Shown: positions 15,420-43,328, numbered from the stretch's first letter. The stretch: 64,000 nt of DNA from Eutreptiella sp. 'Long Island Sound 2002' (GCA_964036045.1 OZ038378.1:8680001-8744000); one strand, 5' to 3'. Notes: generated by a model not told the origin, from the sequence alone. Numbers and translations: made by a program.

Positions 15420-15428
15420 CACACACGC

Positions 15429-15499
<71 letters not shown>

Positions 15500-15516
15500 A
15501 ACACACACACACACAC
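15420..15516. repeat. (CA)n microsatellite
   Basis: Directly visible. Confidence 0.98.
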
Positions 15517-16599: not shown

Positions 16600-17010
16600 G
16601 TTACAAAAATGGTGTGGGCCGTTGGGGGCGGACAGGGACAGTTTGGGCTCAAGGCGGAAGGGAGGAGGGGGTCCGCGTCATCGGGGCGGGCACGCCACAC
16701 CTTGCGCGTCAGGAGCGGCCACCCTGCGGCGTTTGCCATGCGCTGCTGCAGGCGTAGCACCAGCCGCAGCCCGTGATGCAGCCCCCGGTCGAACAGCAGC
16801 CAGTTCAGGTTCGCGACCGTGACGCCGCACTGCAGTGCCATGAAGGCCTCGCACGGCTTGATCAGCACCAGCGGCAGGCCGCTCTCGCCGGGGTCGCCCC
16901 ACCCCTCGGTCGTGGTGTCCACGCACACCACGTCCGCGTTGGGCGGCACGAGATGGCCCAGGGTCTTTGCTGCGCGGACGTCCGCCACGACCTGCACGAA
17001 TGAGAGCAGG
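16600..17010 (-). CDS. Probable exon of the FCP1-like gene (BRCT-like region)
   Basis: ORF 16404..17120 contains VADVR (FCP1/CPL DVR-like) and EAFMALQCGVTVANLNWLL, resembling the BRCT A..GI.IV...WL signature. It is co-oriented with and downstream of the FCPH exon. Boundaries are approximate. Confidence 0.45.
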
Positions 17011-17604
17011 TCACTGGGGTGGGGGGGGGGGGGGGTGGCCATCAAGGCGGAGTGAGTATGCCGACTGGCGCTTCTGGGTGTACGTACGTGTTCGCCGTTT
17101 GAGGAGGGGATCCTCCACACGTGGATAAGTGGTGGTTGTCCTTAGGGATGAAGAGGGCGGGTTCAAAAAACCGCAGGAGGTCGGGAGCCCGCTCAGAATG
17201 CCACGGTGACTGTTGTCCCCATTTCGGGAAGGGGGGGGGGGGGGGCACCGCAAAGGTGCAGTAGTTTTCACACTTGGTCCTCCCGGTTCAGCGCAATCGG
17301 TTGAGTTTTGTGGAGGCATGCCTCTGGGAGGGTGCCTCTAGGGGAGTGCATAGGGCATTGGAGGAGAGAGACAAGGTGTGCGACATGTACCATGGGGAAA
17401 TTTTGTTTCGCTGTTCTGGTCCCGAAAAGGCTTGGCAGGGACACTGCACAAAGCGAAGAGAAGGGGTTACAGCCCTCGCTGTGGCAAACGCTGGTTTTGG
17501 ATCGAGGCTGATGGTGTAGTAGCGGAGTATCAGCCCATCATGCAGCCGATGCAACCCATCTTCAAAGGGATACCTTGCATGTATCCATGGGAAGCAGCAA
17601 TGAA

Positions 17605-17680
17605 AGAAGGAAGGAAGGAAGGAAAGAGGGAGGGAAGGAAGGGAAGGAAGGGAAGGAAGGGAAGGAAGGGAAGGAGGGAA
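17605..17680. repeat. (GGAA)/(AAGGG)n microsatellite
   Basis: Directly visible. Confidence 0.9.
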
Positions 17681-17844
17681 AAGAACGAAGGGCATGCAAT
17701 CCGAAGTATCCCTTCAAGCGCAGGTTTGGTTGGGGGGTCATTTGGGGGTCATTCGGGGGTCATTTTCGGGTCATTTGGGGACTTCCAAAACTCAGGAGAT
17801 GGGGGTAAGGGGGACGGGGGAGGATGGCTGCTCAGAAGAGGAAC

Positions 17845-18093
17845 CTTCACGCGGTGTCTGAACACTTTGTCGTACGGGTCGATGATCTGCAGCACCGCCT
17901 TCACGAATTCCGTGTCCTCACAGTGCGTGTACAGGTACACAGAGCAGTTGCAGCTCACCAGCTCCTTGAAAAAGAGGTCGAGGCCTGGACGTGGGAGGAC
18001 AAAATACGTGCCGAAGCGGGTGGTGATTTTTCGGGCGCCCATGCCCACCATCCGCTCTGCACTGGGGTCCATGGTGGTGGCGATCAGCAGTTC
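17845..18093 (-). CDS. Exon encoding an FCP1/NIF-like HAD phosphatase homology domain
   Basis: ELLIATT..YFVLPRPGLDLFFKEL..VYLYT..AVLQIIDPYDKVFRHRV matches the FCP1/SCP pattern RPG.D.FL..L..Y.YT....I..IIDP...F..R. Bounded by an AG acceptor (18094) and a GT donor (17844), both phase 0. Confidence 0.75.
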
Positions 18094-21000
18094 CTGAATT
18101 CAATTGGGAGCGGCGTTTAGTGAAGCATTTTGGTCAGAGGGAGGATGGGAAGGGGGGGTGAGGGAGGGGAGGTGAATCATCAAAAATGCCGAGCGTTGAT
18201 GATGACGTCGATGGTGCGGAGTCCGATGCGGCCCCTGCACCGGTGCTTGCAGGTGGCGCCGGACTTCGCAAAAACGGGAGATGGCAAACGCCGCCGCAAC
18301 GACGATGAACAACCCGGCGGTGGAAGCGCGAAAATCGCTGAAAATGGTGCAAAAAGGCGACGACTTCAGGACACCCGCTCAATCCCAATGCCAACCACCA
18401 AAAACACCCAGCATTTCTTGTCCCTGGTGCACCGGCAGTTCCACCAGTAGGCCCCAGCAGCAGCTCTTCTACCCCAACATCGAGTGCCTCCACTGCCAGG
18501 TTCCCTCAAGATGCCTATGTCCAGGCGTTTGCTAGGTTTCTTGTGAGTGCCGAGATTTTGTGCCCCGGTGTGTTCTCATGTTTTTCCGGTTCAATGCACT
18601 TAGACTGCGTTTTGTGGAGGCTTGTCGTGTGTGGGGGGGGCTGGAGCTGTGCAGTATCGGGGGTGAGAGAGGAATGCTATTCCATGCCTCAGCGCTGCAG
18701 CAAACTGCCTGCGTAGCGTCCACTCCCCTGCTGGTGCCGACATGTTTCACATGTGGCAGTTCCCGTGAGATTTGGAGGGTGCTCCCCACCACATCTGATG
18801 CGGGAAATTGCAACACAGGGAGAGGGTTCCGGATCACCCAGTGCTCCCAAAGGGCTTGTCCCACCGCTGGCCCACGGTCGCGCCATTACTGCCCCCGTGG
18901 CGTCTAGTCCCATGCCAACTCATGCAGTCATTCGTGAGGTTTGGAGGGTGCTCCCTAAGCGACCCTCAGTTTCCTGGGACCAGAGGCTTGTTGGCGAAGG
19001 GCTTTGGTATGTCAAAGGACGTCCTGTGGAGACCCAGCTCACGCTGCATTGAAATCTGCGCGTAACATGACCAATTTCATGCTACCACAGCGATGCGGCC
19101 CTAAACCAGCTGCCCCTGGCCCGTGGCCTATGACCAGAGGCGCCAAGGGCACCAACGCCCCATGGGACCACTGCAGAAAGCAACACGTTGCCAGTGACTT
19201 GAGCAGCACATGGCTTCTGCACAGGTACTCAGATGCCAGTGTGCTGCATTCAATTAGCAGCTTCTGTACTGCCTTCATTTTACTAGCCAAGAGCTGCTGT
19301 GTGCAGCAGCCATTTGCTGGGTTGCTCAATGGCAGCAGCGTTTTGATGATGAGGTCAATGGCCAAGTGCGGCTCAGTGCAGTGACCATTCGCTGATTTGT
19401 TCACAGGCCAAGTGCTGCTTGTCGACTAAATGCAGGGCACAGCCCATCAATTGAATGGGGTATGCAGCCTACAATTTGGAAGCTGCCACAATGCAAACAA
19501 ACGAAGCAGATGGCTGCAAAACGAAACTAGCACACACTGAACTACAAAATGAAAACTGCTCTTGTGCTCGGCTGAACCTCTGGTGCTCGCATCTCAGCAC
19601 GGCGTTGGGCTTCAGTGTGCTTTTGCGCTCGCATGAGCGACTAGTTGCATCCCACACTTGCTGAGTGCATACCTGCTGCCAATTGTATGCAGTACACTGA
19701 TTGGCAAAAAACCAACGCAATACTGAGGCTGCAAATTAATCATAGCACACAGGCCACCAATTATGAGCATCACCCAAGCTGCTAAACCAACATAGCACAC
19801 ATGTGGCCATTTGAGTGCAGAACACTATACAGCTACTTGAATGCACCGCACAGGCTGCGAATTAAATACCACACCCAGGTAGCCAACTAAAGGCAACACA
19901 CAGCTACTTGAATGCCACACACGGTTACTACACAAATTCAGCACCTAGGCTGCCAATCGAGTACAATGCACACAGGCTACACTCGGGCGTAGCACACATA
20001 CTGCCAACTTGAGTGCCGCATTTTGGCTGCCAGAGGACTGTAGCACCCAGGCTGCTAGTTGAGTGTGGCACACAATGGTATGTAACACATACAAATGGCA
20101 ATGAATGCACACTGCACATGGCCAGTAGCGAAAGAGGGCAACGACTGCGCAGGGGGACCGGCAGAACGATTGCCAGCGCATATCTGCGCATCCCCCATGA
20201 CACCACGACACCGCAGCAGCCGACAGAAAAACCACAAGCACTTCCTGCGACCGCATGACCCAGGGTTCTACTGCACATGCCGCTGTGCACCGCTGTGGGC
20301 TGAGGGGTTGGGGGGGGGGGGTTTCCGCACAGCGCGCACACAGCGCCCGTTACCAGGGCGACCGCACCAGATTCACCCCTAAACCACAAACCCCTGAAAA
20401 CACCACATGCAAGGGCCAAACGCTCCGGACCTGTGTGGTCCATACTCGCCAAAACCTCCTGATGGCTTTCACCCGACTCCATCACACCGTTCTCTTGCAA
20501 TTGTCCCTCTCCCATAGATACAAAGTCACACGGGCAAGGTACTGGACAGAAGGGCCAAAATTACGCACAGCGCACGGTGTGCCCCCTCAAGTACCATGTT
20601 GTCGTCTTCTCAGACAGGATACCCGTGCTTCAACAATGGTGTGCGGGCTTGCAATGTGGGGGAGTGGGGATTGACAGGGCCCCCTGGTCCGACTGCCCCC
20701 CCCCCCAAAAAAAGGCTCAACTGATGGGGGCGCTAGAACCCAACCGGAACCGTCCCTCAGGGCTCGGAGGTCGTTCGGATCCCCAAATTCGAAAAAATTG
20801 AAAATTGCATTTTGGGGATCAGTGCGTCGGGCGGGTCCAGAAAAGTCAGCATGGGCCTTGTGCTGTGCAAAAAGAATTAACCACTGAAACCCCTGAAACC
20901 TGAAACCACTGAAAAAATTTCAGGGGCCTTCAGCTGGTGACTGATCAATGACGTGGTCAACTGAGCCCCTTTCGAGACGCCCCTTCCTCCTTCAGGGGCT

Positions 21001-26524: not shown

Positions 26525-28608
26525 GTGCATCTGCTCTTGGGGGCTTCGAACTGTCAATGGGTCAATGGAGGTAGACAACCTCCCATTGTACTTCTGAAGG
26601 AAAAAACAAAAAGACACTTATTGAAATTGTCCAAGCAACGTGAGTGGTGGGAAACAGACTACAGTACGGACGCCACTATGTGGACGGGCAAGAGAGTAAC
26701 CAAGAGTCATTCTGACTTGGCCAAAAGGCACCGTCCTGACCTGAAACCCAATCGGTGGTGGCGCCTAACGGTGCCTTGCTGGACAGCATGAACATTCTGT
26801 TATGGCGCCTGACGCCGCCTTGCTGGACAGTTCGGAGATTACCCTGTGGTGTGGACCAAGCCGGCGGATGCACTACTGCTGCAAATGGATGCTCTGTCGC
26901 GAGGCAATCACTGGGTGAAACCAGACGCCCAGAGGCCTGGCGAACTGTGGATCCGCTTTGGATTGGATGGGGTTCCCCTATGGAAGAGCCATGTTGTGGC
27001 CGGCACATTGGCGCCTTGTTCACACCTTCGAGATCTCAAGCAACATAGCCCTGATCGTCATTTTGTTTGCATACTATTTCGCGGATATGACACCAAAGAG
27101 CTGCTGAAGCAATGCTTGCAAAAGAGCGGATACCTTGGTAGCGTGGACGACCTGAACGGCAGTTGTGTAACGATTAACGGTACACACTATGTCGTGAGAC
27201 TATTTATTTGTGGGGACCACATGTTGATGTCACAAATCAGGCAGGGATAGGCCTACATCCACACGGCCAGAACGCCATCCTTGCCCCTATTGTGCAGCAC
27301 CCGCCCCTGATGTCCTTAATTATGCAGCTCAGGCCATAAAGGTGGTTTGCTGAAACGTACAGGCGTCCACCACCGCCTGTCGTACATCCATATGGTTCAT
27401 ATTGCCAGTGCATTCATATGCTGTTCAATCACACAGGCTCAACGTGTCCCCTTCTTGGTTGGGGTGCTCCACTATCTATGTACATAGTCGTGACTGGGCA
27501 CAAAAGTCAAACAGGCCAATGTCTCCGTGCCGCAGAGCATCCACATGCACCGGAGCCAAATTGGACTTTGCATCAGGTCCCCCGGGGAGGGGGACCCCTT
27601 TGGGGGCATGGGGTGTACCTCAATCGAGTACATAGCGTGACTGGGTACAGAAGTCAATCAGATCCTGTCGCTACCACAGTTTCAACCTCAGATTAGGTGC
27701 ATTCTTGCCTGCTCACTCTGACATGGGAGAAGGCCCCTGTGTCTCAGAACAGCCAGAGTCCAGAGTGGTAGGTGATTCTGGTGGGGAGTGCCCTGAACGC
27801 TCAGGTCTTGGCAATGTCCCTTGGGGCAGAGGCCATGTTTGTTGGAATACCAGCTGCACAGCATGCCATCGACTGCAGTCATGGCATGGTGAATGTGTTG
27901 TGCGGTGTGTGTCTCCCTGTTGTTGAAAACACGTTGATAGAGTGTGGTTGGACCAACAAAGATTTGAATGACTATTTTGGTACCCTTAACGTGGACCCCA
28001 TGTCGTATGTGGTTGGAGGCGAGGTCACTGGTGATGGGCTCCCACGATCCATTGACAATGCATTAACATTCTTTGAGAAGATATGCTACAATCAAATTGA
28101 TACGACACTAAAATTGGTTTGTCATGACATCATTCGCCTTGATGGGCAAGACCACAGCAAATCAGACCTAATTGCAGCCATGTTCGAGCATGTTGCCATT
28201 ATGGTGAGTGTGGCATACACTCCTGAACCAACATTGTCATAGGTTGACATGTGTGAGACAAGCGCACGCGCATTGCGGCGTATTTGGAAAACGCTGGATG
28301 CACCGACGACACCATGGGGCCATGTGTGGACGGCACATGTACCACAGTTCCTACGGCTCTGGGGAACGTTGTTTCCTTTCTTGTGCCACGGCTTTGAGGG
28401 ACGTTGGAGGGACCTCAAGGTTGAGATTCGGCATATTGCCCATGGGCAATGGAAAGGTGCCTCGTGTGGATTTGAAACGGTTTTGCAGTATAGTATTGTC
28501 CGTTGGACGCTACGGAAGCTTGGCATTGCCTTGCATGGTCGCACTTGTAAAGTACGCAAAACCAGCTCTTGGTTGTGGCAAAGGTATAATGGTTTCATGG
28601 ACCAATAG
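26525..28608 (+). pseudogene. RAG1/Transib-like DDE transposase (second family), fragmented, probably intron-containing
   Basis: Collinear motifs across ORFs: GGRQPPIVLLKEKTKRHLL (NBD-like), IRFGLDG (D1), LFRGYDTKE, LFICGDH (D2), CPYC after a +1 shift at ~27242, IDCSHGMVN, and TPWGHVWTAHVPQFLRLWGTLFPFLCHGFEG (H-x4-H and catalytic E; compare RAG1 [31 protein letters not shown]). Candidate 39-nt GTGAGT..AG intron at 28204-28242. Confidence 0.8.
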
Positions 28609-29830
28609 CTATACGGGACGAAGCACCAAGAGCACTTTTTTCAATTGAACATTCAAGAGACTGTGCAAGCAGTACAGGGCAGTGGCATATATGCACTCAC
28701 AAACGGGGGCACACATGTGGCCGTCCACCTGATCACTTGTATATGCATTGCTTTCTGTACCTGCAAACCCCGACTTTCTAGTACTCTCTACAGCTTGTTG
28801 GGGCTATACCTGTCCGTGTTCCTCGTGGTAATACTAACTTACCCTCGACTCTGCACCGTGTGTGTCGTGGCTCCGTACCGTGCCGTTTACTTACGGTGTG
28901 GTCTCGAGGCTTGTGGTGTGTGTTTGTGGCGTGGATATGCTTGTGTGCCCTCGTATGCCCTTGTACTTGGCCACGGCGATGCACTCACGTGTGGGGCGAT
29001 TCAGGCAGGCCCATGCCATGCACATGTCCCTAGCCTCCGTAACTGCACTCACCTGTGGGGCGTCTCAGGCAGGCCGAGGCCATGCACACGTATTAGGCTA
29101 CAGCGATGCACATCTCTACACGTGTCACGACACCAGCACAGCATGGGAACAGCCAGAATATATGCACTTATATATATGCCCGGCGGCATGTGTACACAAT
29201 GCAAAAGCAAAACGAGCAAAAGGCTCAACAGTGTTTTCAGAACATAACCTGCAGATCCACAGTGAAGCAGTGCGAAGAGTGGGTGCCTCGTCGTACGTCC
29301 ACAAGATCATTCTCCGGTTTTCGCCTAAAACTCTTAACAAAGCATATGCATTTCATGTTGTTTCACATGCCATGGTGCCCACCCTGCCCTGCCCATTGTC
29401 GTCCCTGGTCGTACCACAGCTTGACTGTATGTAAAGGTATGACATGCAACAGGTTTCGTGCCTTGAACCGCACCCGTATGTGCATCCACCACCACCCCCA
29501 TCTATATTTCTTGAAGCCACACCCTTGGATAATACATCGGACATTAGCCTCTAAAGATCTGAGCGACCCATGTAGCTGGAATGTCTTATGTGTTAGGGCA
29601 GGAATCATAGATTGTAACACAGATGGGGAGTTTGGCGACCAAGGGTCAGGCCAGCGCTGCCAGAGCCGCACAGCAGGTCCCATGCCATGGCACATAGGCA
29701 CCCCCTTTATACACATGTCAAAGCAGGGCTCAGTAAGCAGGCGGGTGTCACACCAATCGGCAGCTACTCCTGTGGTTTCCCACTTCATTGGTATGTCATA
29801 GATGGCATGGTGCAGAATTTCAACAAACAG

Positions 29831-30719
29831 AGCAACTACTCCTGTCTTGTTTGTCTGCAAAACCCAGTGTCCTCTTCAGTGACACACAAGCACAGCACAA
29901 AGCGCCTGGAAGGCCATAGGATCCATTTTCTCTGCGGTGAAACAGTGCAGGATCAACTTTCAGTACACCGGGGTCACTGCTGTGAACTCTGCCCTGCTGT
30001 GTGGTGCAGTGCTGGTTCAGTGCAAGTGGGCAAACAGCAAAATCGGTCTGCAGAATGTGACTGTGCACTGTGGTGCTGTGTCTCAGTCTGTCATTGTATG
30101 CATGCACACAATTCGACTCTCACTTTATTGTTACGTGCTTGGTGACAGTCCCCACTTTCGCAAGCTTTTGTGTAGCAGGGGTGTCCACCAGGAGTGTGGG
30201 TAACCTTTGATAGCCAAGTCGGCGGTGATGAGGTTGACATTCTGTTGTGCATCTGCCCTAGTGTCTCTATAATATCCTGAATTTTTTGCCAGTGTGGGTA
30301 CGAGGGATTTCAGCGTCCCTTTGGCCTTTGGTGCATGGGCATCAGGATAGCGCATGAGGAACTGGTGTGGGGCTGTGTGTTTGAGGCTTTTGTCTGCCAA
30401 GCGGAGACACACACGGGGTGGATGATGGGCTGGGTTTTGGGGCTCCATAGTCATGTCTCCCTGCAGGGTGATCCAGTGGTCACCCCCCCCCTCCCATTGG
30501 AGGTCCAGGTTGTAGATACCTTCAAACGTCGCTTGCAGCAAATCTACTGGGGTGTCAGCAAACATAATGCCATTTATGTTATCTCGGAATCGCCCCGGTG
30601 TGGCAGGTAGGTGACATGGATGTGTGGTGAGTGGGGCTGCAGGTGCAAAGGGTAAATACAGTGGAAAATACAGGTGCTCACTGAGCATGCATTTGGCACT
30701 GGCCAGCTGTGAGGAGCAG
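29831..30719 (-). repeat. PLE-A 3' pseudo-LTR
   Basis: Matches 42440-43328 over 889 bp with only a handful of substitutions. Confidence 0.95.
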
Positions 30720-33700
30720 GGTCCTCCTATCGCCAGGCCTCGTTTTTGACGGAGAACCCAGTTGGAAAACACAAAGGCATCATTACAGAATATGTCAAAA
30801 TAGACATAGCGGAGCACTTGGTGAATGTCGATGTTATGGTACAAATCTGGACTACCTGATCCTATTCTATCGAGTTTGTGATCTATTCGATTCACTGCAA
30901 AACGAAGTAGCCCTCTCTGCGGTCTTCCCCGTGGTCCTGGAGCCTGGGCCACTAAAGCAGCAATAGTGGAGATGGACGTCCAGACATCATTTCTATCAAG
31001 GGAAGGGAACATAGCCTTTATGTCCAATTCAAAGAGTGCGACAGGTCTATTCAGGTCACCCTGTTGCCACTGTTCACATAGTTGGTGGTTCCACAGACGG
31101 ACGGTGGGCAGGAGGTCTTTGCAGTGAGGCATTTCTAGTGTGTTCAGGACACGAGCACCCTCGGTTATGAACATCTGGAGGCAGCGGCTTATGTGGCGAC
31201 CTCGCGCGCGCAGGGGGTGGCGGTAATGTGAAAAAACCAATCTAGTCTTTCAATCTATGGGGCGTAGGGGCGATAGCAGTCTAGGGGCAGTACCCCAGTG
31301 GTCAGGGAGGTGACTTGGATGGTCTACAAGGCGGTAGATTAACCTGCTGAGGCGCCAATGCAATCTGTCCCACGGCTCGAAGCGCGTGGTGTGCAAGATT
31401 TGTCGGTTAGCCCACAATAGCATAAAGGAGTTGGCCACACAAAGGGACCAGAATGCCGGTATGTCACTGAGATATGGCCATATGGCAACCCTCCAGAGGT
31501 GAGCAAGGAGCACATCAATGCAGAAGGGCTGTGGGGGCACGCGCCAGTTTTTCAGTTCGTCAAGCTTGTTTTTTGGGACATCGCGGACTGTGGGGGGGCC
31601 TTTCTTTTTCCCGTCCACCCCGTGGCGGTCCACCCCGTGTAGTGCAGCCATATCTTTGATGTGTCGCATTGCCCATGCGCGCGCATCACGACCCGATGGT
31701 GCGATGTGTATGATCTCAAACTGCTGGGGGTCTTGGATGTCCTGCAGTGTACGTTGGATCATTCCTACTCTACACACGGCGGCCAGTTTACCCATATTTT
31801 TATCACGGCCTTCAAACACCCATTGGGGTGCCCATTTATCACGGATAGCCCGGACACATTGTTCCCATCCATACCAGGGCATTGTGATGTGTTGTGCCCG
31901 CCAGCATTGGCGTGCACAGGAGAGGAGTGAGGAGTACAGGTGGGACGCCTGCTTGTCTCCTACACGCGCAGGGAGCAGTTTTACAAGTACATCTCTAGCT
32001 GACTGCACAACAGATTTGCGGACAGAGTGCCATGTGGGGCAGACATCATTGTTCCCATGCTGCAACAGGACCCTGGAGTCAACCCCAAACACCCTGCGGA
32101 GCAATTGTGGGTGGCGGATGAATAGGTGCCCCTGGACCAGGGGTATATTGAGCCGTCGTGCCAGTGTGGCACAGTGGCAAGGCTGAGACGCTACATGCTT
32201 CATTGCATCAACAGTGTCGTATTTTATGTCATCCTGTAGCAACTGGCTGACAGTGGGGTTACGTGTGCTCACAAGGCGTGCGCTTTGCACCATGTAATTG
32301 CGGTAATGTGTGGGGAGTGGCAGGGAACGCAAGAAATCTTTAAACATTGTTAAGAGGGGGAAAGCGTGCACGTGTGTCATAGCCGGCACTCGTAGCGGCA
32401 CGTGGTTGGGCAGTGATAGTCCCGTTTGTGCATTAATTCTGTGTGCAACCTTTTGGTAACAACGGTTTCTCAGGGGTCCTGGGAAGTGTTTTTTGGCCCA
32501 TGTGAGAATTTTCAGTTGTACATGCAGTGGGACGTTGCACTTTAGCTTGTCTGCAATATGGTGTGTCATGCGGGCAAGTTGTGCTTTGGTGTATTTGGGT
32601 AGTACCAGGTTGCCATTGAGTAATAGCTTCCACTTGGGGTCTGTGGGGTACACACCGCGGACATTCAAAGTGTGCCCCATTTTTCTGATCCAGAAAAGTT
32701 CACGCACGTCAGCCATGTTTTTGGGGCAGGCTTCAAGTATTGCGACGCCAAAATTTTCAGGGCCCAGGCGGAACGTGGTGGGGTATAGCAGCCCCATACC
32801 CCTGATGCCTCGTCTGCCATACAGGCTGTGCCAGGATCGTGCAGACCTGATGTGTTGCATAAAGCGGACAATCGTTTTTTTGAGTTGGCCAATGCCTCCT
32901 GTTTGGCCCACATATATACGTTGGGTACGGGTTGACCAAATGGCATAGATCCACGTACCTTCAGTGTCAAGTGGTAGGAAGGGTTTGTGACAAAAGGCAT
33001 AGAGTCGGCGGAGCCACCGGCATGGTGCCACCGCAAGGAGTTGGTTCATTGCATTGAGGTGGGACACCCCTTTGTGTTGGGGCCACCTGTGGGCTGCACG
33101 TGCCTCAGCAGTGAGTGTGTCCCATTGAGTCCAGAATTCGCCACGGAGTTGTGGCTTGCTGGACCTCTGGCACGTCCCAGGTGGTGGGGGGGAGAATGTT
33201 GCTCCGATTGTACGTGCTTGGGTCCCAACATGTGACGTCACATCATTTGTGGACACCAGTGTGTCAGTGGTTCGTGTGATCCAGAAAGCAGTCAGGTGCA
33301 TGTGTGCCGGCTGTGTGTGTTTGTGAGCGTGGTCGCGCAGCAGTGGGAGTGTGTTGACTTTCCCTGTGAGGATGCCGCAACATTGTGTGGGCATTTCACT
33401 GCACCAGGTTTGCAGGATGGAACTGAAGGGGTGTGTGTCAAGGCACAGTATTATGACACTGGTTTTCTTGCTGTGTTGTGTCATTCTGGCCCGCAGTGTT
33501 GGTAGCAGTCGTGCAGGTGTGTCTGGCTGGATGAGCCATAGGCAGCGGCAGTCCTCTGGTGAGCTGAAGATCCAATCAGGTTCAGCCACACATCCTATCA
33601 GTTTTTCCGCTGGCACAATGGCAGTTACACGGCGTGCTCCCATGTGACTTGGTGCTATGCCGATCACTGTATCTAGTTTAAATGTCTGTCGCCATAGGTA

Positions 33701-33877
33701 CTCCCATGGTCTGGGCACAGTCCAATGGCTACCTTGGAAAAAGAGTCTGGTGTCATGGTATTGTGTGTGTATTGTGTGTGCAATCGCTGTGAAATCATGG
33801 GCATCCAACGCGGCGACCTGTCTCCAGTTTGTGATGGATTCTAGGTCCGCATAGTGTTGCCATACGCGATATGCCAT
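30131..33877 (-). CDS. PLE-A GIY-YIG endonuclease + reverse transcriptase (one in-frame TGA at 31250-31252)
   Basis: WIYAIWS..IYVGQTG..RFMQH..ELFWI..LN (GIY-YIG) precedes RT motifs RDKNMG, ELDIKAMFPSL, GLAIGGPCSSQLA and RFRDN. ORFs 31250..33877 and 30131..31240 are in the same frame (gat TGA aag act aga ttg). Confidence 0.9.
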
Positions 33878-34337
33878 ATGCGATTAATCGTAGGCGACGT
33901 GCGCAGGTGCTGCTGGAGCAGCTGCAGCATTTTTCGGTGGGGGTGGAGCGCAAAGAGGGGGACACATTTATCAAAGGATGAAATATCAATGGAGGCAGCA
34001 TCATACATTGACCGTTCAAGTACTACCCTGTGTCGCCGGATGTTATGTTGCACTCTCAGTAACCACTGTCGCTCCGTTTCATCTCGTTCTGCTACACAGC
34101 GGCGCAGTCTGGCAATGGCTTGCGCAATATTTGCAGGTTGCTGCAGTGTTGGTAGCGGGGGGATTATTATGAGTGGGGGGTGTAGTGGCTAGGAGAAAAC
34201 ATAGTCGGTCCAGTACCCAGAGGTGGTTGTCTTTTTGGTGAATGTCCGGAGGGCTTTCAGGTAGAGGGGAGAAGGAGTGTGTGGGGCAGGATGGACAAAC
34301 AATTGCCTGTAGGAGGCACGGCATGCTTCAATATCAA

Positions 34338-35181
34338 TCATGATGGCTCTGTTCCTGCGGGTCTGGTAGGTGCCGGCGCATGGGTCGCAGTACGTGGGCG
34401 TTTGCCGGACATTCTAGCTGCCAGCGCGGCAGTGGAATCTTCCTGGTCCTCGTACCAACAGGATTTTAAATTCTCTACGAGGATAGGTGGCGTATTTGGC
34501 GAGAAGTCAGTCAATTTTCCCCACCATTTGTTGTCATCGATAGTGGACAGGATTGTGACTCTGTAGGCAATCCACTCGTGGGTTTCATTGACATTTGTTC
34601 TTGGCGGCACGTGTATGAAGCCGGTTTTCATCGCCCGCACTCCCGGGGATGCCGGCAGGCGCTTTCTTGAGTCTCTGATTTCCATCGGAGTATTGGCAGC
34701 ACTTGATATGGACAGTCGGCGGGATGGATCTGGTGATTGTTGGGTCTCTGGTACCACGTCGCCTCCTTTTCCATCAGCTCTGTGTGTTTGTGGTCTTTGC
34801 GCCAGTGGCGTCGGGGTGGGATGTCGTCCATTACTTCGTGGGTCTTGCGGTGTTTCATCCACATCATCCCATGGCGTTAGCGATTCGTCTGCGTCTTCCT
34901 CATTGTCACTCACAAATTCTTTGTCTTTGTCCATCTTTGACGCAATAAATTTCAAGATATCTCTGTCTTGTCTTCGATTTTTATGCAGCACCGTGAGTGA
35001 GGCGTCCATTTTATCCATTCGCTTGGTCATGAGTTCATTGTTGGTTTTCAGCTCAGCGACATCGTTCCGTACTTCCTTCATGTTCTGCTCTAGTGCATCA
35101 ACGCGCCCTTTCTCTGCGTCAGTCATTCCAGCTCCATTTGACCCTGTCGCCTGGACTTCACTATAGTCTGGTAGTCGTCCA
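34338..35181 (-). CDS. PLE-A ORF1, 3' half (coiled coil + low-complexity region)
   Basis: Heptad-like VDALEQNMKEVRNDVAELKTNNELMTKRMDKM. It joins in frame to 41519-42173 once the transposon and one CA copy are removed (..VQSC|GRLPDYS..). Confidence 0.75.
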
Positions 35182-35440
35182 TGTACCCTTCGTGAACGGC
35201 CGTTAAGTGGCCGTTTGAATAATTGCGTGAATTTCACGTGAATTTACCCAAATTTTGAGGTTTTTGGGGGAAAATGCCATATTCTTGGTTCATTTCAAGG
35301 GCTTTGAGGGGCCAAAATTCCTCCCCTAGCTTTGTTACGCATCATCCAATGAAAGTCCCGCCCCAAAAGCATGCATCATGACCGCACCGTGCCCAAAACG
35401 AGAGGTGCCGGAACCCGGCAAGCCTGTAGCCGATTCACAG

Positions 35441-35510
35441 CCGTGAATTCACGTGAATTCGTACGAAATTCGCACGAAATTCGTACGAATTTCACGTGAA
35501 TTCACGTGAT
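35441..35510. repeat. GAATTC/GTACGAATT palindrome array 1
   Basis: Tandem and inverted copies of GAAATTCGTACGAATTT and CACGTGAATT. Confidence 0.9.
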
Positions 35511-35655
35511 TTTACACTAATGTTACCCGTGTGCACCCCCTGATTTGTCCTCACACCCCTAGTAAGCCCCCCAGCATGCACCCCGGTCACAGGCAACAAT
35601 GGTCTGGGTTCGTAAGGTCATCTCATGTCCGTCTCTTGCGGCACCGGAACCGCCG

Positions 35656-37386
35656 CTATAGAGTCTGAAGGTGCTGCATGTCGGTTAGAAGCCGTCTTCT
35701 TGTGCGGCTTGCATACGGGTGTACACTTATGGGCCCTTGCCCATGTTGAGCCCTTTTGGTCGCATCCCACCCATGCAACCAAAGGCTATCGTCAATGGTG
35801 TGGTTGTCCACAACCACTTGCACCCCTAGTCTCCCCCGGAGGAGGCTTAGGCCCCCGCTGTTGCGCAACATGCGCTTCAGCCTCCGGTGACTTCCCTCCA
35901 TGGCAAAGCAGGAGAACTTTGACAAGATTCTCCACTTCTTTGCAAAATAATACATGTGGTCGATCCAAAGATGCGTCCACAGAAGTTTGCCCCACTGGAG
36001 CTCATTGTGGGCAGCGCCCATGGCTATGCTATGGTTCCGGAGCCGCCCCAAGTCGGCCCCGAAGAACCATGCGGAACACCACGCGTATACACACATGCTT
36101 GCAAAATTCTCCCACCACGTTTTGCACACCAACTCCCAACTTTTTCCCCCTACTTGATGCTGCCTGACACTAGGCTGCTGTAGGCAAGCATCTATCATCT
36201 TCTCCCAACCCCTATTGCGCATGAAATGGATGGCAGCAGCACACTCCATCCTCACCTTCCCCTTGCTGTTTGCCTTGTCATTATTTAATGAGGCACGGGT
36301 GCAAGTTCGTGCAGCAAGCCGTGCCTCATCTAGAACCGGTTGCAGCATGGTGCGTGCCACAGTGGCCGGTGCCTTCCCTGTCAATTGTACAACTAGGTCC
36401 CGTGTCCCGTTGACTGCACACAACAGGACACGAAGGACCCCATGGAGGCCATAATCAGGCACTCGCCTATCACTCGTAATGGTCCTATATATAGCATTTA
36501 TGGCAACGGCCGGTTCCCAGTTGCCGTCTATCGCACTTGCTGTGCCAAAGGTAGCAAGGCACAGAGCACGGTTACGCATGCAGACCCAACACACAGTGGC
36601 ACCAGGGGATTCTGCCTTCCAGTTTTGGCAGCCCGCCATGAGCACCTGTGCCTTACCATCTGCACACAGAAAAAAAAGGGACTGCCTATCGTTCCCTGCC
36701 GTATCCTTAAAACTTACGGTTGCGGCCTTGCGCAACTCATCATCAAAATCAATTTCCTGGGAGGCCGCGTAGAGGGTCTCCCACTTTTCACTGCCCCCTA
36801 GTAGCCACCAACTAGATAGTTGGTTGGGGCTGGCGGTGCCACCAAGCGTGCAATGGACGTACGAGGCCTCATGCCTCGATGTACCGTCCACCGCAATAGG
36901 CAACCAATGCAGCCGTCTGTCCCCGGGCTGCATGATGGCCGAGGGTGGGGGTGGTCGACACTTGAATAGGTGGCCGATGCGGTCAGGTAGGTAGCAGGCC
37001 GCACCATTGATGACCGTGTCGTCACCCGTATAGGCAGTGAACGCCCGGGACACCGGCAACGCTAGCTGCCGAAGCATGCCGTACACCTGGTCCCATACCA
37101 CACCGTACGTCATGCTCCCCACTAGGTACCGGGACTCTGTCCTAGAGAGGTGCAATGACCGGATCCTCCACACGGCCATAATCAACCTCTCCTCCTGGGT
37201 GGGCTCGGGCTGGACAGTGGCTACAATTCTTGTTTCGGGGGTAAGCACTATTTGCCCCGTGTCGGGCAGGTACTTGACGGTGTAGGGTGCTGCAAGCTCC
37301 TTGGTAACAACCTCGCGGAGCTCTTGTAGGCGCCGCCGTCGTGTACGATCCGCTACCAGATGGAATGGCTCCTTGGGCCGTGGCAT
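35656..37386 (-). CDS. RAG1/Transib-like DDE transposase, 576 aa, apparently intact
   Basis: PRPKEPFHLVADRTRRRRLQEL (NBD-like), IAVDG (D1), FFLCADGK (D2), CWVC, PDYGLH, THLWIDH (H-x4-H) and FSCFAMEGSHRRLKR (E), in the order of RAG1 D600/D708/C727/C730/H937/H942/E962. Confidence 0.85.
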   Translation of the reverse strand: MPRPKEPFHLVADRTRRRRLQELREVVTKELAAPYTVKYLPDTGQIVLTPETRIVATVQPEPTQEERLIMAVWRIRSLHLSRTESRYLVGSMTYGVVWDQVYGMLRQLALPVSRAFTAYTGDDTVINGAACYLPDRIGHLFKCRPPPPSAIMQPGDRRLHWLPIAVDGTSRHEASYVHCTLGGTASPNQLSSWWLLGGSEKWETLYAASQEIDFDDELRKAATVSFKDTAGNDRQSLFFLCADGKAQVLMAGCQNWKAESPGATVCWVCMRNRALCLATFGTASAIDGNWEPAVAINAIYRTITSDRRVPDYGLHGVLRVLLCAVNGTRDLVVQLTGKAPATVARTMLQPVLDEARLAARTCTRASLNNDKANSKGKVRMECAAAIHFMRNRGWEKMIDACLQQPSVRQHQVGGKSWELVCKTWWENFASMCVYAWCSAWFFGADLGRLRNHSIAMGAAHNELQWGKLLWTHLWIDHMYYFAKKWRILSKFSCFAMEGSHRRLKRMLRNSGGLSLLRGRLGVQVVVDNHTIDDSLWLHGWDATKRAQHGQGPISVHPYASRTRRRLLTDMQHLQTL

Positions 37387-37505
37387 GGTGTGAGATACAG
37401 GACCTGTTGAATGGGCAGGCAGTCATCGCAAAGTTTCTACCATCCCCCTCCCGCAGACAACTCTCTCTACTGTGATTCGCATGCAATTAAAAGAAATTCA
37501 CATAG

Positions 37506-37750
37506 ATTCGCACGAAATTCGTACGAAATTCGTACGAATTTCGTGCGAATTTCACGTGAATAGAAATGTGTGAATATTCTGAAAATGTGAAATTCGTACG
37601 AAATTCGTACGAAATTCGTACGAATTTCGTACGAATTTCGTGCGAATTTCACGTGAATAGAAATGTGTGAATATTCTGAAAATGTGAAATTCGTACGAAA
37701 TTCCTACGAATTTCGTACGAATTTCGTACAAATTCGTGCGAGTTTCACAT
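37506..37750. repeat. Palindrome array 2 (upstream of the transposase)
   Basis: Same motifs, with internal higher-order duplication; ends ~120 bp 5' of the ATG at 37386. Confidence 0.9.
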
Positions 37751-38124
37751 GACTGTCACAGAATTTCTGCCAAAGCCTCATCCTTCTGCCCTCGTTGACC
37801 CTCACAAAGCAAGCTCAGGATGGTGCTCATGGGCTATCACACACCCAGTCCAGTGGCTGTCATTCCGCTCGTCACTCAGCCAGCAGTGTAACACGTCAGG
37901 GGGCATAGCATATCCCAAATAAAATACAAACAGTTCCGCAGAAAAAATCGCAAACAGGTCAGGGGGCACACCGTACCCCAATTAATGTACAAACAGTGCT
38001 GCAGAAAATTTCGCACAGTGGGGGGGGGGTACCCCACATATCGGTCAAACTGCCCATGCTTGGGGGGGGGGGGGGCAGGATAACATTCGTCGTGGTTAGA
38101 AAGGACAGGTGCTCCGGAGGGTAC

Positions 38125-38943
38125 CTACGCACCCCCCCCCCCCGGGAGCAGAGCTCCGGGGCGCCCTTTCCGCTTGCACGTGGGGGGGGGTCCGTCCTCC
38201 TCGACGTCAATGACGTCAACCACCACCCCCATCTTCCGCTGCCTCCCCACATGGACGCGCATGGCAAGCCATGCCACGTCCACCCACTCCGGCCTCCGCT
38301 GCTCCCAACCCGTGAGCACATTCAGCCCAAAAACCCGAGCCGTCGTCACCGTCCCCGCCTCCCCGATCCGCGCCACCCCCGTCTGCACCCGCCAGTGCCC
38401 ACTCACAAGCCGGTAGGCAAACATGCCCACCAGCTCCTTCCCCGCAGGCAGGTTGGACCCCCCCCGGACCACAATGGGGCAGGGGAAGGAGATGCGGAGG
38501 GTGCCCTGCACCCCCCGCGACTCCAACTCCATGTCCCACACGGCACTGAGATGCCGCTGCCGCCCATCGGGCCCGGGCGGCACCTGCTGGGTCCAGGCCG
38601 GATCCGGCTGCCTGGCGGCCAGGGTGACCCGGTCCAGGGGGGGGTCGTTGTGGGCGTCGCCCAACTCGTCGCGGGACGGCTGGGGCACCACCACCTCGCG
38701 CACCACATGCCCCCTGGCGGTGCTAGCCTCGCTGCCTCCCGAACGTCGAGAGCGCTGCGACCCCTCACTGCGCACACTGCCGGCCTCGCTTGGTGCCCGT
38801 CCACCGCCGGTGCCTGCGGGCTGGTCGCCACCGGGGCCTTCGGCGGGCTCGGCGTGCTCCTCGGGCAATCGAGGCCGGGGCTTGTACTTGCGCTTGCTGT
38901 GGTGCCGAATATCCGGCGACCAAGCGGTGAACGGGACCTGCAT
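38125..38943 (-). CDS. Transposon cargo gene 1, hypothetical protein (~272 aa)
   Basis: Open GC-rich frame from ATG 38943 (MQVPFTAWSP..). A disordered N-half precedes a beta-rich globular-looking C-half (LSAVWDMELESRGVQGTLRISFPCP..WRVQTGVARI). No family recognised. Confidence 0.6.
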   Translation of the reverse strand: MQVPFTAWSPDIRHHSKRKYKPRPRLPEEHAEPAEGPGGDQPAGTGGGRAPSEAGSVRSEGSQRSRRSGGSEASTARGHVVREVVVPQPSRDELGDAHNDPPLDRVTLAARQPDPAWTQQVPPGPDGRQRHLSAVWDMELESRGVQGTLRISFPCPIVVRGGSNLPAGKELVGMFAYRLVSGHWRVQTGVARIGEAGTVTTARVFGLNVLTGWEQRRPEWVDVAWLAMRVHVGRQRKMGVVVDVIDVEEDGPPPTCKRKGRPGALLPGGGGA

Positions 38944-39029
38944 GCAGATGTGGGGAGGTGTGCAAGGCACAAATTGAGAAAGGGGGAGTGGACACGAGGC
39001 AATGCAAGAGCAAAAGGAGCAAATTGGAC

Positions 39030-39170
39030 GGAATTCACAGAAATTCGTACGAAATTCGTACGAATTTCGTACGAATTTCACATTTCGAGAAAATTCACAC
39101 AAACTTATTCACGTGAAATTCGTACGAAATTCGTACGAATTTCGTACGAATTTCACGTGAATTTCGTCCA
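39030..39170. repeat. Palindrome array 3 (upstream of cargo gene 1)
   Basis: Same GAAATTCGTACGAATTT motifs; ends ~90 bp 5' of the ATG at 38943. Confidence 0.9.
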
Positions 39171-39174
39171 ATTT

Positions 39175-41123
39175 GCCAATACACAAAGCAAACACACAAG
39201 CAAGCACACCTTGCACTCGCATGGGCAGGTGATGCTCCATGCCCCGGTCCTCGCGCACTTGGGCAACCGCCACGCCACGCTGGGACCGTGCTCACCAGGT
39301 GCCACAGCGTGGTCGGCCGACCCGGGGGGGCAATGCCGGACAAGGCGAAGTGGATCTCCGACTCCGCGTCGACATCGCCCCCCTTGGCGACCTCCAGCTG
39401 GTGCACGCTGCCCACGAAGAACAGCATGCACTGGGGGCCGACCTCGATGACGGCGAGGTCGGAGGCCGGGGCCGACCGGCAGATGAAGGTGGGGTGGAAG
39501 GGGCAGGTGGGGGGGCCTGCCGGGAGCGTCTGGGGGGGGTCGGCGAAGAGGGCCTCCCACAACCCCACCCTCCCAACCGCCCCCTTCCCCACCCACAACA
39601 CCTGGGGCACGCTGGGGAGGTCCCAGCTGGACAAATCCCCAGCAACGTCCAGGGCCTCCTTGGGGGGGGTGGCGTCCAAGTGTGTGGCGTTGGCCTGGTG
39701 GTGTTTGTGTCGGGGGTCGGGGGTCCACAGGTTAAAAAGAGCCCCCTGCAGCCCATCCTTGGAGTCCGGGAGGGCAGGCAATCCATGATGGCGGCTGGTG
39801 GCCACCATCAGCAGCATGTCCCCCCGATGCAGCTCAACGGTGTCCCAGCGCGCCTCCCCCGCCTCCCCAAGGGCCGTCCCCGCCTGCACCGCCACCTGGT
39901 AGTCCTCTGACAAGCAGAGGAAGCTACTCAGGTGGCTGTCCCCCACCTCCCTGTCGCTGGGGGGGAGGACCTCGGGGTGGGTGGCCAAGTCGGTGTGGGG
40001 GAGCTGCGGCCCACTCCCCACACTGGCCACAATGACGTTGCCCGGCGTCATTGGGTGGAGGTCCCCAACCCCAGGGACACTTTCGGTGAGGTGGGGGTGG
40101 AACTTCTTGAAGAGAGGCCCCCCCACCCCGACCCCAAGGTGCTCTTGCGCTTTGCCACCGGCGGGGGAGCGCAGGATCCTTGGCCTGCTCCTCACTCCGC
40201 GCGGCGTTGAAAAGGAGCTCAAAATTCTTTGCGACGACTTTTTCGTCGCCGCTGCCCCACGCCTTCATCACCTTGTTCCACCCCACCTCACAATCCCGTG
40301 CCTCCACAAGCCCCCGAAGCACAATGTAGCCGTTCCCATCAACAAAGTTGAGGGGCGGCTGAGAGGGGCCAACCCTGTCGGGGGCGGGGTCAGGGCTGCC
40401 CGTCACCCCATGAGGGGGGTCGGGAAGGGGTTCGGTGCGGAGGGGGGGTTCACTCGAAATGAAGGGGGGGGCGCATGAGGCACCACGGTGCCATTGCAAA
40501 GAAGTTGTGCTATAGAAGGTGGGGTGGGTGACGTCGGGGACGTGCACCTGGGGGGGGGGGGTTGTGGGATGGAAAGGGGCGACGCCCAAATCATCCCACC
40601 ACCGGGGGTTGGCAAGATGCCAAGAAAAGGGGAAAAAAGAGTGGTCTGCTGGTGCACCTGCAGCAAGATCGTGCATGCACACCATATCGCAGTGGGGGGG
40701 GGTGTGGACGAGGTTAGTGGTGGGGTACACCTGGACGTGGGCGTCCTTAGGCTTCCCCACAGGGTTGTTCCTCATCGAGTTGAGGAGCTGGTCAACACTG
40801 GAGGGGAGAGGGGTTAGATGGAGAAATTTGAGGGTGGGGAGTTGGTGGCGCAGTTCCCTCCACAGGGTTGTGGCCCATCCCCTCCCCCCGAGGTAGCTGT
40901 TGCGGGTGGGGCTGCGCATGTCGATGTGGATGACATCGGGGGAGGGGTCGAGGGAGGCTGTCCAGCCCACGATGTCATCCACCCCCAGTGCCTCCGACTC
41001 GTACGTTGCCTCCTCCAATTGATGGTGGGCAACGGGGAGCGCTTGGTAGTGGGCGAGGGTGTCGGCTGCGGGGTCGGGGCGCGAGGCCACGCTGGCGAGT
41101 TGAGACATAGTCTGCTGCGACAT
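39175..41123 (-). pseudogene. Transposon cargo gene 2: GNAT-like N-terminus + PhyH-like 2OG-Fe(II) dioxygenase, one frameshift at ~40152
   Basis: ORF 39924..41165 has VIHID..YLGGRGWATTLW (GNAT motif A-like) and DGNGYIVLRGLV..FELLFN..RRWQ. ORF 39095..40222 continues with GPQLPHTD (HxD)..SSFLCL..LHRGDMLLM..RHHG (distal His). Deleting one A from the caaagcg run joins them. The 3' end is uncertain. Confidence 0.72.
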
Positions 41124-41194
41124 TGTTAAAAGAGAAGAACGCGAGGGCTTTGAGAGCTGTAACAAAGCGAAAGAGTGGAAAGGAGGGTAAATTA

Positions 41195-41330
41195 GTACGA
41201 AATTCGTACGAATTTGGTACGAATTCGTACGAATTTCGTGCGAATTTCACATTCTCGTGAATCTGTGAATCTAGCGTGAATTTCTGCGTGAAATTAGGTG
41301 CGTGAATTTCACATTCACGCGAATCTCACC
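41195..41330. repeat. Palindrome array 4 (upstream of cargo gene 2)
   Basis: Same motifs; ends ~70 bp 5' of the ATG at 41123. Confidence 0.9.
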
Positions 41331-41518
41331 AAATGTGTTAAACCATGCGGGGACTTTAAACCTCTAAATTGCACCTATTTGTTGCATCTTACTTTGGGCG
41401 AAGGTAGCACGACAAAAGCACACGATAGCACCAAGTTACGAGCAAAACACAGCAAAATTGGGTGAAATTCACGGTACCGTGAATCTCGGATTCAAACGGC
41501 CGGTTCACGAAGGGTACA

Positions 41519-42173
41519 CACAGCTCTGGACTTGTAGGTCAGGCAGCTTTCGGCGAACCCTTGTGCTCAGCGCTTGCATCTCAGCCTCCGATTGGAGTCC
41601 TCCCACCGTACATTCTCGTAAGTGGCTCTGCGGCCATTCCAGTACCCATTCATCGTCTTCAATGAGGTCTAGCAGTGTGTTAATGTCTTTTTCCGTGATA
41701 TCATTTCTCGTGTTTGATTTGATTCGGATCATCCAGCGGCCCGCTTTCTGCTTCGCGTCCATGGCTTTCGCCTCCGCCGCCCGTTCCGACTTGTCTTGCT
41801 TGGGGTTCTCGTTGCGGTACTCACTCCACTTCTCCAGGACATCATTAATGTCGAAGTCTGGATCACTCTTTTTGGGGCATTCTGATACGAAGTGAGGTCC
41901 CCCACAGTAGAAGCACTTGACAGATTTTTGTGGTCACTTTCTCTTGATTTTGTCGCCGTATGTGGGGCAATCATAGACTCTGTGGCCAATTTCTCCACAA
42001 CCAAAGCATTTGATCCCTCGCTGTCTGTTGCCTTCCTCTGGTTTCGCTTTTTCGCTTTTGCGTTTACCTTTGCATTGTTGCGTGCTGTGTCCGCACCATC
42101 CATGGTCAGGGTGAGCACACCATTTCGCACCAGAATAGGGCGCTTTTCCACGCGGCTTGTCATCGTCAGACAT
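41519..42173 (-). CDS. PLE-A ORF1, 5' half, Gag-like zinc knuckles (one in-frame TGA at 41934-41936)
   Basis: CFGCGEIGHRVYDC (CX2CX4HX4C), then aag TGA cca caa aaa tct gtc aag in the same frame into CFYCGGPHFVSEC, continuing in frame into ORF 41505..41762. Confidence 0.8.
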
Positions 42174-42439
42174 GTCGATGTGTATGCTGTGAGTTGTTCG
42201 TGGGCTCCGCTGCGCGCAAGGGCACAGAAAATGCTATACAGAGATCAGAGGAATGCGGTTATGTGCGGTAATCGCTATGTTCGTGTATCAGTCGCACCCA
42301 ATTTGGACCAAGTCCTTCACAATGTTTTTCCACTCTGTTTTTCCACTCTGTTGTAATTGCACCAGTACTTAGAGATATCAAGAGTACTCTTCTCGGCGTC
42401 CGTGTAAATCACGATTTACCGCACCAGTACTCCGATTTC

Positions 42440-43328
42440 AGCAACTACTCGCGTCTTGTTTGTCTGCAAAACCCAGTGTCCTCTTCAATGGCACACAAGC
42501 ACAGCACAAAGCGCCTGGAAGGCCATAGGATCCATTTTCTCTGCGGTGAAACAGTGCAGGATCAACTTTCAGTACACCGGGGTCACTGCTGTGAACTCTG
42601 CCCTGCTGTGTGGTGCAGTGCTGGTTCAGTGCAAGTGGGCAAACAGCAAAATCGGTCTGCAGAATGTGACTGTGCACTGTGGTGCTGTGTCTCAGTCTGT
42701 CATTGTATGCATGCACACAATTCGACTCTCACTTCATTGTTACGTGCTTGGTGACAGTCCCCACTTTCGCAAGCTTTTGTGTAGCAGGGGTGTCCACCAG
42801 GAGTGTGGGTAACCTTTGATAGCCAAGTCGGCGGTGATGAGGTTGACATTCTGTTGTGCATCTGCCCTAGTGTCTCTATAATATCCTGAATTTTTTGCCA
42901 GTGTGGGTACGAGGGATTTTAGCGTCCCTTTGGCCTTTGGTGCATGGGCATCAGGATAGCGCATGAGGAACTGGTGTGGGGCTGTGTGTTTGAGGCTTTT
43001 GTCTGCCAAGCGGAGACACACACGGGGTGGATGATGGGCTGGGTTTTGGGGCTCCATAGTCATGTCTCCCTACAGGGTGATCCAGTGGTCACCCCCCCCC
43101 TCCCATTGGAGGTCCAGGTTGTAGATACCTTCAAACGTCGCTTGCAGCAAATCTACTGGGGTGTCAGCAAACATAATGCCATTTATGTTATCTCGGAATC
43201 GCCCCGGTGTGGCAGGTAGGTGACATGGATGTGTGGTGAGTGGGGCTGCAGGTGCAAAGGGTAAATACAGTGGAAAATACAGGTGCTCACTGAGCATGCA
43301 TTTGGCACTGGCCAGCTGTGAGGAGCAG
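42440..43328 (-). repeat. PLE-A 5' pseudo-LTR (5'-truncated tandem copy)
   Basis: Direct repeat of 29831-30719, including the RT 3' end (RFRDN). Confidence 0.95.

Follow-up and report, generated by a model that had tools for sequence, protein, structure and literature searches.

Among DNA transposons, the clade named CMCT comprises EnSpm/CACTA, Mirage, Chapaev, Transib, Plavaka, ESTA, Lanisha and RAG1, is defined by the motifs C(2)C and H(3-4)H, and has target site duplications (TSDs) of 2-5 bp (Kojima 2025, PMC12730594). Within this clade, PlavakaA families have 2-bp TSDs and ends of the form 5'-TGT..ACA-3' (Kojima 2025, PMC12730594); the ends TGTGTCG... and TGTGCGA..., each with a 2-bp TSD, are examples (Figure S2, PMC12730594). 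The Plavaka elements of red algae carry accessory genes adjoining tandem arrays of inverted repeats, and one of these genes, PAG3, encodes a putative DNA-binding domain and a PhyH-type 2-oxoglutarate (2OG)-oxygenase domain with its best HHpred match in the PhyH family (Bostrychia preprint, bioRxiv 10.1101/2025.02.11.637652). Here, we describe a transposon of 6,337 bp in DNA of Eutreptiella sp. 'Long Island Sound 2002' (GCA_964036045.1 OZ038378.1:8680001-8744000). The whole stretch of 64,000 nucleotides that was analysed is referred to as the window.

The element is most probably one copy, somewhat decayed, of a cut-and-paste DNA transposon of the CMCT group that is present in many copies and was active recently. 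The transposase shows the pattern of that group (D, D, C-x2-C, H-x4-H, E), and the TSD lies within the range of 2 to 5 bp. The lineage is an unnamed branch, from a protist, of a kind already known, an orphan with respect to sequence profiles and not a new class, and the element is not a Transib or RAG transposon proper. No elements of such kind in euglenids were found in the literature. The initial annotation of this DNA, made from the sequence alone, had proposed a possibly undescribed branch of the RAG1/Transib/CMC radiation. That proposal does not hold in this form, since both the combination of TGT ends with a 2-bp TSD and the gene-carrying habit have been described (PMC12730594; bioRxiv 10.1101/2025.02.11.637652). 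As for the terminal features, PlavakaA is largely the described family, with such ends and a 2-bp TSD, that the annotation had named as the finding that would count against it.

Ends and target site duplication of the element

The copy in the window has the following boundaries:

35182..41518, minus strand: whole transposon copy, 6,337 bp, with all genes on the minus strand
35182..35197, plus strand: left terminal inverted repeat (TIR) TGTACCCTTCGTGAAC, at the transposase-proximal end
41503..41518, minus strand: right TIR, perfect complement of the left TIR
35180..35181, no strand: left CA of the 2-bp TSD
41519..41520, no strand: right CA of the 2-bp TSD

When the 64-kb window was searched for TGTACCCTTCGTGAAC with up to three mismatches allowed (<=3), only two matches were returned, both with 0 mismatches. 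The perfect 16-bp TIRs starting with TGTA that had been annotated are thus present at both ends. If one 1-nt indel is allowed, the match between the inverted ends reaches ~23 bp.

The element interrupts an open reading frame (ORF) of its host sequence, and this frame reveals the length of the duplication. Excising the element together with one CA restores an open minus-strand frame that is 418 codons long and includes a CCHC knuckle, while removing 0, 1 or 3 extra bases, or moving the ends, leaves at most 296 codons in the host ORF. The CA duplication, which had been deduced from the in-frame restoration of the interrupted ORF1, is therefore confirmed. TSDs of 0, 1 and 3 bp were rejected, as the host ORF stays broken. 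The same is true of a TA TSD with CCCTT ends, and the flanking dinucleotides differ among copies.

Six further loci of the family were fetched from one ENA assembly. Four complete copies have the same TIRs as the window copy:

L002, 4801-10205: 5,405 bp, TSD AC
L003, 3285-10216: 6,932 bp, TSD CG
L004, 3282-10227: 6,946 bp, TSD AA
L007, 3446-10636: 7,191 bp, TSD GT

Collecting such copies had been suggested as a check on TSD length, and all four have 2 bp (AC, CG, AA, GT). With the window copy included, a 2-bp TSD was found in 5/5 complete copies; its sequence varies, and a target consensus is not evident. A 2-bp duplication in all five copies would arise by chance with a probability of ~1e-6. 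The termini are 5'-TGTACCC across all complete copies. No paralogous empty site was found among the element loci compared.

Copy number and age of the family

Copies of the family are 92-98% identical and 5.4-7.2 kb long; identity between the window copy and the others is 94-98%. Near-identical relatives of the transposase occur by the hundred in one ENA assembly, in clusters of 203 and 248 sequences (at least 90% identity), and ~18,000 contigs from one DNA-type run map onto the element. The large clusters and the high identity of the copies agree with the recent activity that had been proposed. The element is also present in metagenomes of estuarine, sediment and urban origin, as well as in metatranscriptome assemblies from estuaries.

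Motifs and predicted fold of the transposase

The transposase gene occupies one feature of the element:

35656..37386, minus strand: DDE transposase with the RAG1/Transib/CMC fold, 576 aa in the window copy, 587 aa in others; D167, D243, C266xxC269, H315, H472x4H477, E497

An exhaustive profile search yielded 585 relatives of the transposase. The divergent full-length relatives (27-44% identity) are all on environmental contigs of 1-3 kb, and no relative was found in a scan of bacterial and archaeal genomes, a collection unsuited to a eukaryotic element. In an alignment of 150 homologues, the motifs AxDGT (D167), ADGKAQ (D243), C266-x2-C269, PDYGLHG (H315), H472-x4-H477 and EGxHxxLK (E497) are conserved, which upholds the annotated order of the D-D-E residues and the zinc ligands. 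Synonymous changes exceed expectation in the frames of both the transposase and gene A, one of two further genes of the element. No Pfam match was obtained for the transposase, nor for 24 and then 150 of its homologues, and the Pfam families DUF1280 and DUF1258 did not match the transposase.

The fold was predicted with AlphaFold. An alignment of 10 sequences gave an unusable model, with a predicted local distance difference test (pLDDT) value of 47, while an alignment of 150 sequences gave a pLDDT of 91.4 and a predicted template modelling score (pTM) of 0.84. In this model, D167 is placed on the first strand of a sheet of three strands, D243 comes just past the fourth strand, and E497 is on a helix beyond a long helical insert. 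The layout, as modelled, is that of an RNase-H transposase. The model was aligned to solved structures, in a ranking that cannot discriminate among CMCT families because structures of CACTA, Mirage and Plavaka are absent from the PDB (score, then extent of the alignment):

RAG1 (residues 460-1007): 22.3, 422
HzTransib: 20.6, 391
BbRAGL: 19.2, 422
P element: 12, 352-355
ISCth4: 8.6, 256
Hermes: 6.8, 286

Among the predicted structures of the ESM Atlas, the nearest clusters are unnamed eukaryotic ones, with template modelling (TM) scores of 0.64-0.66, a Plavaka cluster, with a TM of 0.65 over transposase residues 3-563, and clusters of Transposase_21 (CACTA), with a TM of 0.64. Among the AFDB clusters, uncharacterised eukaryotic proteins are on top (E 2e-15) and RAG1 has rank 27. 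A language-model search gave 0.93 for RAG1 clusters and 0.88-0.91 for DUF1280 and Transposase_21 clusters. The element had been annotated as RAG1-like, and this stands for the fold. It does not stand for a specific affinity to RAG1, because predicted structures of CACTA and Plavaka match as well or better; "RAG1-like" is thus a statement about the fold. The N-terminal 60 residues of the transposase form a basic helix and a hairpin. An NBD-like motif had also been reported, after the nonamer-binding domain (NBD) of RAG1, but the alignments to RAG1 begin at about RAG1 residue 460 and model residue 62, past that domain, and no NBD was found in them.

Two further genes and the state of the window copy

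Two additional genes lie on the same strand as the transposase gene:

39095..41165, minus strand: gene A, 677 aa in intact copies, here two overlapping ORFs
37800..39102, minus strand: remnant of gene B
38125-39102, minus strand: N-terminal part of gene B, an ORF of 325 aa

Genes A and B are found at the same places in L003, L004, L006 and L007. Because both recur in every full-length copy, they are genes of the family and not the cargo of one copy. The constancy of the cargo, which had been put forward as something to check, is thereby established, and the two co-oriented genes, neither of them RAG2/kelch-like, were annotated correctly: Pfam scans gave no kelch/RAG2 signature or other match in gene A or gene B. 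No ParB-like domain was matched by Pfam in the transposase or in either of the two further genes.

Gene A, intact in a protein (P0274) that belongs to a cluster of 193 sequences, has an N-terminal domain without an assigned fold followed by a C-terminal HxD...H region. In its C-terminal half, PHTD is followed 69 residues on by RGDMLLMVATSRHHG (P0274), and the two together make a plausible iron triad. Its nearest language-model neighbours in the Atlas are PhyH clusters, with a weak score of 0.80. Judged from these sequence features, the C-terminal half is possibly a PhyH-like 2OG-Fe(II) oxygenase. The N-terminus scored 0.77 to unrelated clusters in the Atlas, with GNAT-like hints at noise level, and a GNAT-like reading is not supported. 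Homologues of gene A were found in the source assembly only. Of the enzyme cargo that had been annotated, then, a candidate oxygenase is suggested by HxD...H and the PhyH neighbours, with no hidden Markov model match, while the idea of cargo gives way to genes that are constant in the family and were not captured by the window copy. Gene B has an N-terminal part without an assigned fold, then a G/P-rich stretch and then a coiled-coil tail. Its GC-rich homopolymer runs vary among copies and blur the exact reading frame.

The state of the window copy was judged against L003, L004 and L007. The transposase had been described as an intact protein of 576 aa. Its ORF is open, but a CAG>TAG change at 35656-35658 takes 11 very basic residues off the C-terminus of the 587-aa protein, and it is only nearly intact. 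In gene A, two indels near 40125-40150, one of +2 and one of -1, result in the two overlapping ORFs. Compared with the three other copies, gene B has lost ~700 bp at about 38157, comprising the linker and the start of the coiled-coil part. Because its TIRs are perfect, the window copy could still be moved in trans.

The GC-rich region of genes A and B includes runs of 10-16 G (38006-38072, 40543-40565 and similar), whose length varies among copies. Some of the apparent frameshifts could be long-read homopolymer errors and not mutations.

Placement among the known families

Several points weigh against placing the element as a recently active CMCT transposon with an oxygenase-like gene. All three genes are damaged in the window copy. 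Sequence comparison gives no link to any named family: the Pfam models of RAG1 domains, Transposase_21 and Plavaka (PF18759) matched 0/150 homologues at E<=1, and no PDB sequence was matched by the single transposase sequence or by three profiles. The position within the CMCT clade may be Plavaka-like, Mirage-like, Transib-like or a branch of its own. For the oxygenase, the evidence consists only of the HxD...H motif and the language-model score, and gene A has no Pfam or PDB match, a profile search of the PDB included. Contigs from RNA libraries (metatranscriptomes) span the transposase and gene A; transcription is nevertheless not proven, because RNA libraries can contain DNA. These contigs showed neither splice joints nor transcript ends.

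With respect to described families, the terminal features are PlavakaA-like and the accessory module, by analogy, resembles that of red-algal Plavaka. The PlavakaA elements of Agaricomycotina share with the family a variable 2-bp TSD, TGT..ACA termini, a size of several kb, and a DDE transposase in which C(2)C and H(3-4)H are found after the second D and before the E. They differ from it in their fungal host, as opposed to a protist host here, and in that our element has two further genes, constant in the family, and palindrome arrays in its interior; the TET-carrying Plavaka of fungi are PlavakaB. The giant Plavaka of red algae (PAG1-3) likewise have a candidate 2OG-oxygenase gene beside inverted-repeat arrays. 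However, they are 17-19 kb long and carry an N6-adenine methylase/SET gene, whereas our element is 6.3-7.2 kb long and no methylase was found in it; the ParB-like domain proposed for PAG3 was not detected here, and gene A is likened to PAG3 by description.

Mirage and EnSpm/CACTA have TSDs of 2 bp and 3 bp, respectively. They resemble the element in their short TSDs, in the pattern of zinc and catalytic motifs, and in their predicted Transposase_21 structures (TM 0.64), and CACTA elements have subterminal repeat arrays as well. The ends here are not CAC(TA), the arrays also lie between genes, and there is no Pfam match to Transposase_21 or to the two DUF families. Against a strict definition of Transib/RAG1, the RAG1-core fold is present (RNase-H domain, ZnC2/ZnH2 modules and the C-terminal domain). 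A 5-bp TSD, 5'-CAC termini, sequence similarity, and an NBD or a RAG2-like partner are not: Transib, RAG1, ProtoRAG and BbRAGL have 5-bp TSDs and heptamer-like CAC... ends where this element has 2 bp and TGTA, and the element has no sequence similarity to these that HMMER can detect.

If the family is a PlavakaA-like lineage outside fungi, sharing its ancestry and its oxygenase-plus-array habit with fungal PlavakaA and red-algal Plavaka, then its 2-bp TSD and TGT..ACA termini, exactly as in PlavakaA (PMC12730594), are accounted for. The alignment to the Plavaka cluster (TM 0.65) includes the N-terminal 60 residues that RAG1 leaves uncovered, and the DNA-binding and 2OG-oxygenase protein PAG3 by the tandem inverted repeats of red-algal Plavaka (bioRxiv 10.1101/2025.02.11.637652) would be the counterpart of gene A. 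We regard this ancestry as a serious candidate that falls somewhat short of an even chance, since PF18759 matches none of the homologues, Transposase_21 and unnamed clusters fit the structure equally well, the ends differ past TGT (TGTACCC as against TGTGTCG or TGTGCGA), and homologues of gene A were not detected outside the source assembly. A sister relationship to Transib/RAG1 proper, nearer to Transib than to CACTA, Mirage or Plavaka and with a changed target stagger and ends, appears unlikely. The best matches among solved structures are all RAG1, Transib or BbRAGL, the RAG1 clusters score 0.93 in the language-model search, and the H-x4-H-x19-E spacing is the same as in mouse RAG1, where we take H937, H942 and E962 to be the counterparts. 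Yet the solved structures do not include CACTA, Mirage or Plavaka, CMC and Plavaka clusters are among the nearest predicted structures while RAG1 is absent from the Atlas list and far down among the AFDB clusters, the TSD is 2 bp in place of 5 bp, the ends are TGTA in place of CAC, and neither a RAG1 Pfam domain nor the NBD was matched. Placement in the CMCT group, with no closer assignment, is the reading that we prefer.

Palindrome arrays

The element contains four arrays of palindromes:

35229..35520, no strand: array 1, subterminal palindromes 3' of the transposase gene, with TTCACGTGAA at 35233 and AAATTCGTACG in both orientations at 35444-35520
37493..37760, no strand: array 2, the largest, inverted 11-bp units with arms of up to 48 nt (<=48) and 98% complementarity, between gene B and the transposase start
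39020..39198, no strand: array 3, a perfect 42-nt inverted repeat of 11-bp units, between genes A and B
41178..41340, no strand: array 4, a subterminal array of 11-bp units upstream of gene A

The arrays are made of 11-bp units AAATTCGTACG in alternating orientation, which form near-perfect palindromes of 40-48 nt, and of TTCACGTGAA palindromes. All occurrences in the window (30/30) of the array 10-mers and their single-base variants (TTCGCACGAA, TTCGTGCGAA) fall inside the element. The four arrays keep the same positions in every full-length copy (L003, L004, L006, L007), and each gene is flanked by arrays on both sides. In a subfamily whose transposase is 59% identical (L005), the arrays consist of TTCGCGCGAA instead, and on an environmental contig (L008) a 44%-identical transposase is preceded by CTACTAGGATCCTAGTAG palindromes, at 54-135. 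Array position is thus kept while the sequence has changed, which fits either co-evolving protein-binding sites or lineage-specific control modules.

The arrays might not bind transposition proteins at all and might instead be promoter/terminator modules, or hairpin-forming spacers, for the separate expression of the three genes. The placement of one array before and one after each gene speaks for this, as do the distant homologues on environmental contigs of ~2 kb, which resemble transcripts of one gene and have an array located just upstream of their ORF. The sequence CACGTG, a widespread core of transcription-factor sites, also counts for control modules. On the other hand, a sequence that differs between related lineages at a constant position is explained at least as well by co-evolution with an element-encoded binder, and no transcript ends were mapped in the RNA-library contigs. 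In CACTA elements, the repeats that bind TNPA are subterminal, and the two outer arrays here are subterminal as well. We therefore lean against a function in expression alone, while giving it a substantial minority of the weight.

Some further arrays were seen outside the copies compared. The ~2-kb environmental contigs with distant transposase homologues open with palindrome arrays just upstream of the ORF; on L009, the array at 1-45 has the form TTTAGCG..CGCTAAA. On L005, a different element at 11930-18556 adjoins the 59%-identical transposase, ends in ...GCAAAGGGTACA, and has 11 exact copies of a 20-bp palindrome, CTGGCCGAAATTTCGGCCAG, scattered between its ORFs. RNA-library contigs from three estuary metatranscriptomes match only 37518-37553 (36 nt of array 2) and run on into unrelated sequence at either end. 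This places the array units in other transcribed contexts as well.

Proposed mechanism of transposition

In the mechanism that we propose, the transposase, with its RNase-H core (D167, D243, E497) and its zinc module (C-x2-C / H-x4-H), would bind the TGTACCC... ends. It would excise the element and integrate it by strand transfers with a 2-bp stagger, and a 2-bp duplication would result. The arrays may serve as binding sites for an element-encoded protein, as gene-control modules, or as both. The putative oxygenase of gene A may help the element escape silencing, by analogy with TET/JBP in fungal transposons and PAG3 in red-algal Plavaka. A more far-reaching version, in which the family is a deep, separate RAG1/Transib-CACTA branch confined to euglenid-like protists and the oxygenase acts on the palindrome arrays of its own element, oxidising DNA bases or chromatin, seems to us highly improbable. 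If true, the element would direct an anti-silencing system at itself, in a lineage with relatives that use a related class of enzyme to make base J.

As a CMCT transposon, the element adds a protist lineage to the transposase group from which RAG1 arose, one that is invisible to sequence profiles and has a clear RAG1 fold. It shows that a 2-bp target stagger and TG..CA ends are compatible with this fold. Transposons with an oxygenase-like gene and repeat arrays, a pattern of fungi and red algae, would thereby reach a third eukaryotic group, which lends weight to the view that such genes benefit the element, for instance by countering silencing. Being young, abundant and equipped with perfect ends, the family also lends itself in practice to a transposition assay and to the question of what determines TSD length in this fold.

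Host retroelement and neighbouring elements

The window is eukaryotic DNA that is rich in repeats, and an Rfam search gave no match in it. The transposon lies in a retroelement, whose interrupted ORF is divided as follows:

34338..35181, minus strand: 3' portion of the host ORF (gag-like ORF1 of the retroelement)
41521..42163, minus strand: 5' part of the interrupted host ORF, with the CCHC zinc knuckle further upstream

The retroelement extends over 29831-43328, with ORFs at 31250-33877, 34338-35237 and 41505-42173, all on the minus strand. Its gag-like ORF1, which carries CCHC knuckles, is upstream of a second ORF of 875 aa, in which Pfam gives a weak GIY-YIG signal (E 0.047) at an internal position. 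From its sequence, it looks like a Penelope-like element whose GIY-YIG domain is not C-terminal.

The assembly is dense with nested transposons. In L001 (1605-5971 and 12136-13776), the family copy is broken by a nested insertion of 4.4 kb, and a piggyBac-type transposase gene (PF13843) lies 2 kb past the end of the family copy. In the window, pieces of a second, diverged transposase were found at 26800-28610 on the plus strand, with motifs in the style of the family's transposase, GLDGVPLW, FICGDHMLM and FLCHGFEGRWRDLK. These pieces are split across several frames by introns or frameshifts and probably belong to another CMCT-type family in the same genome.

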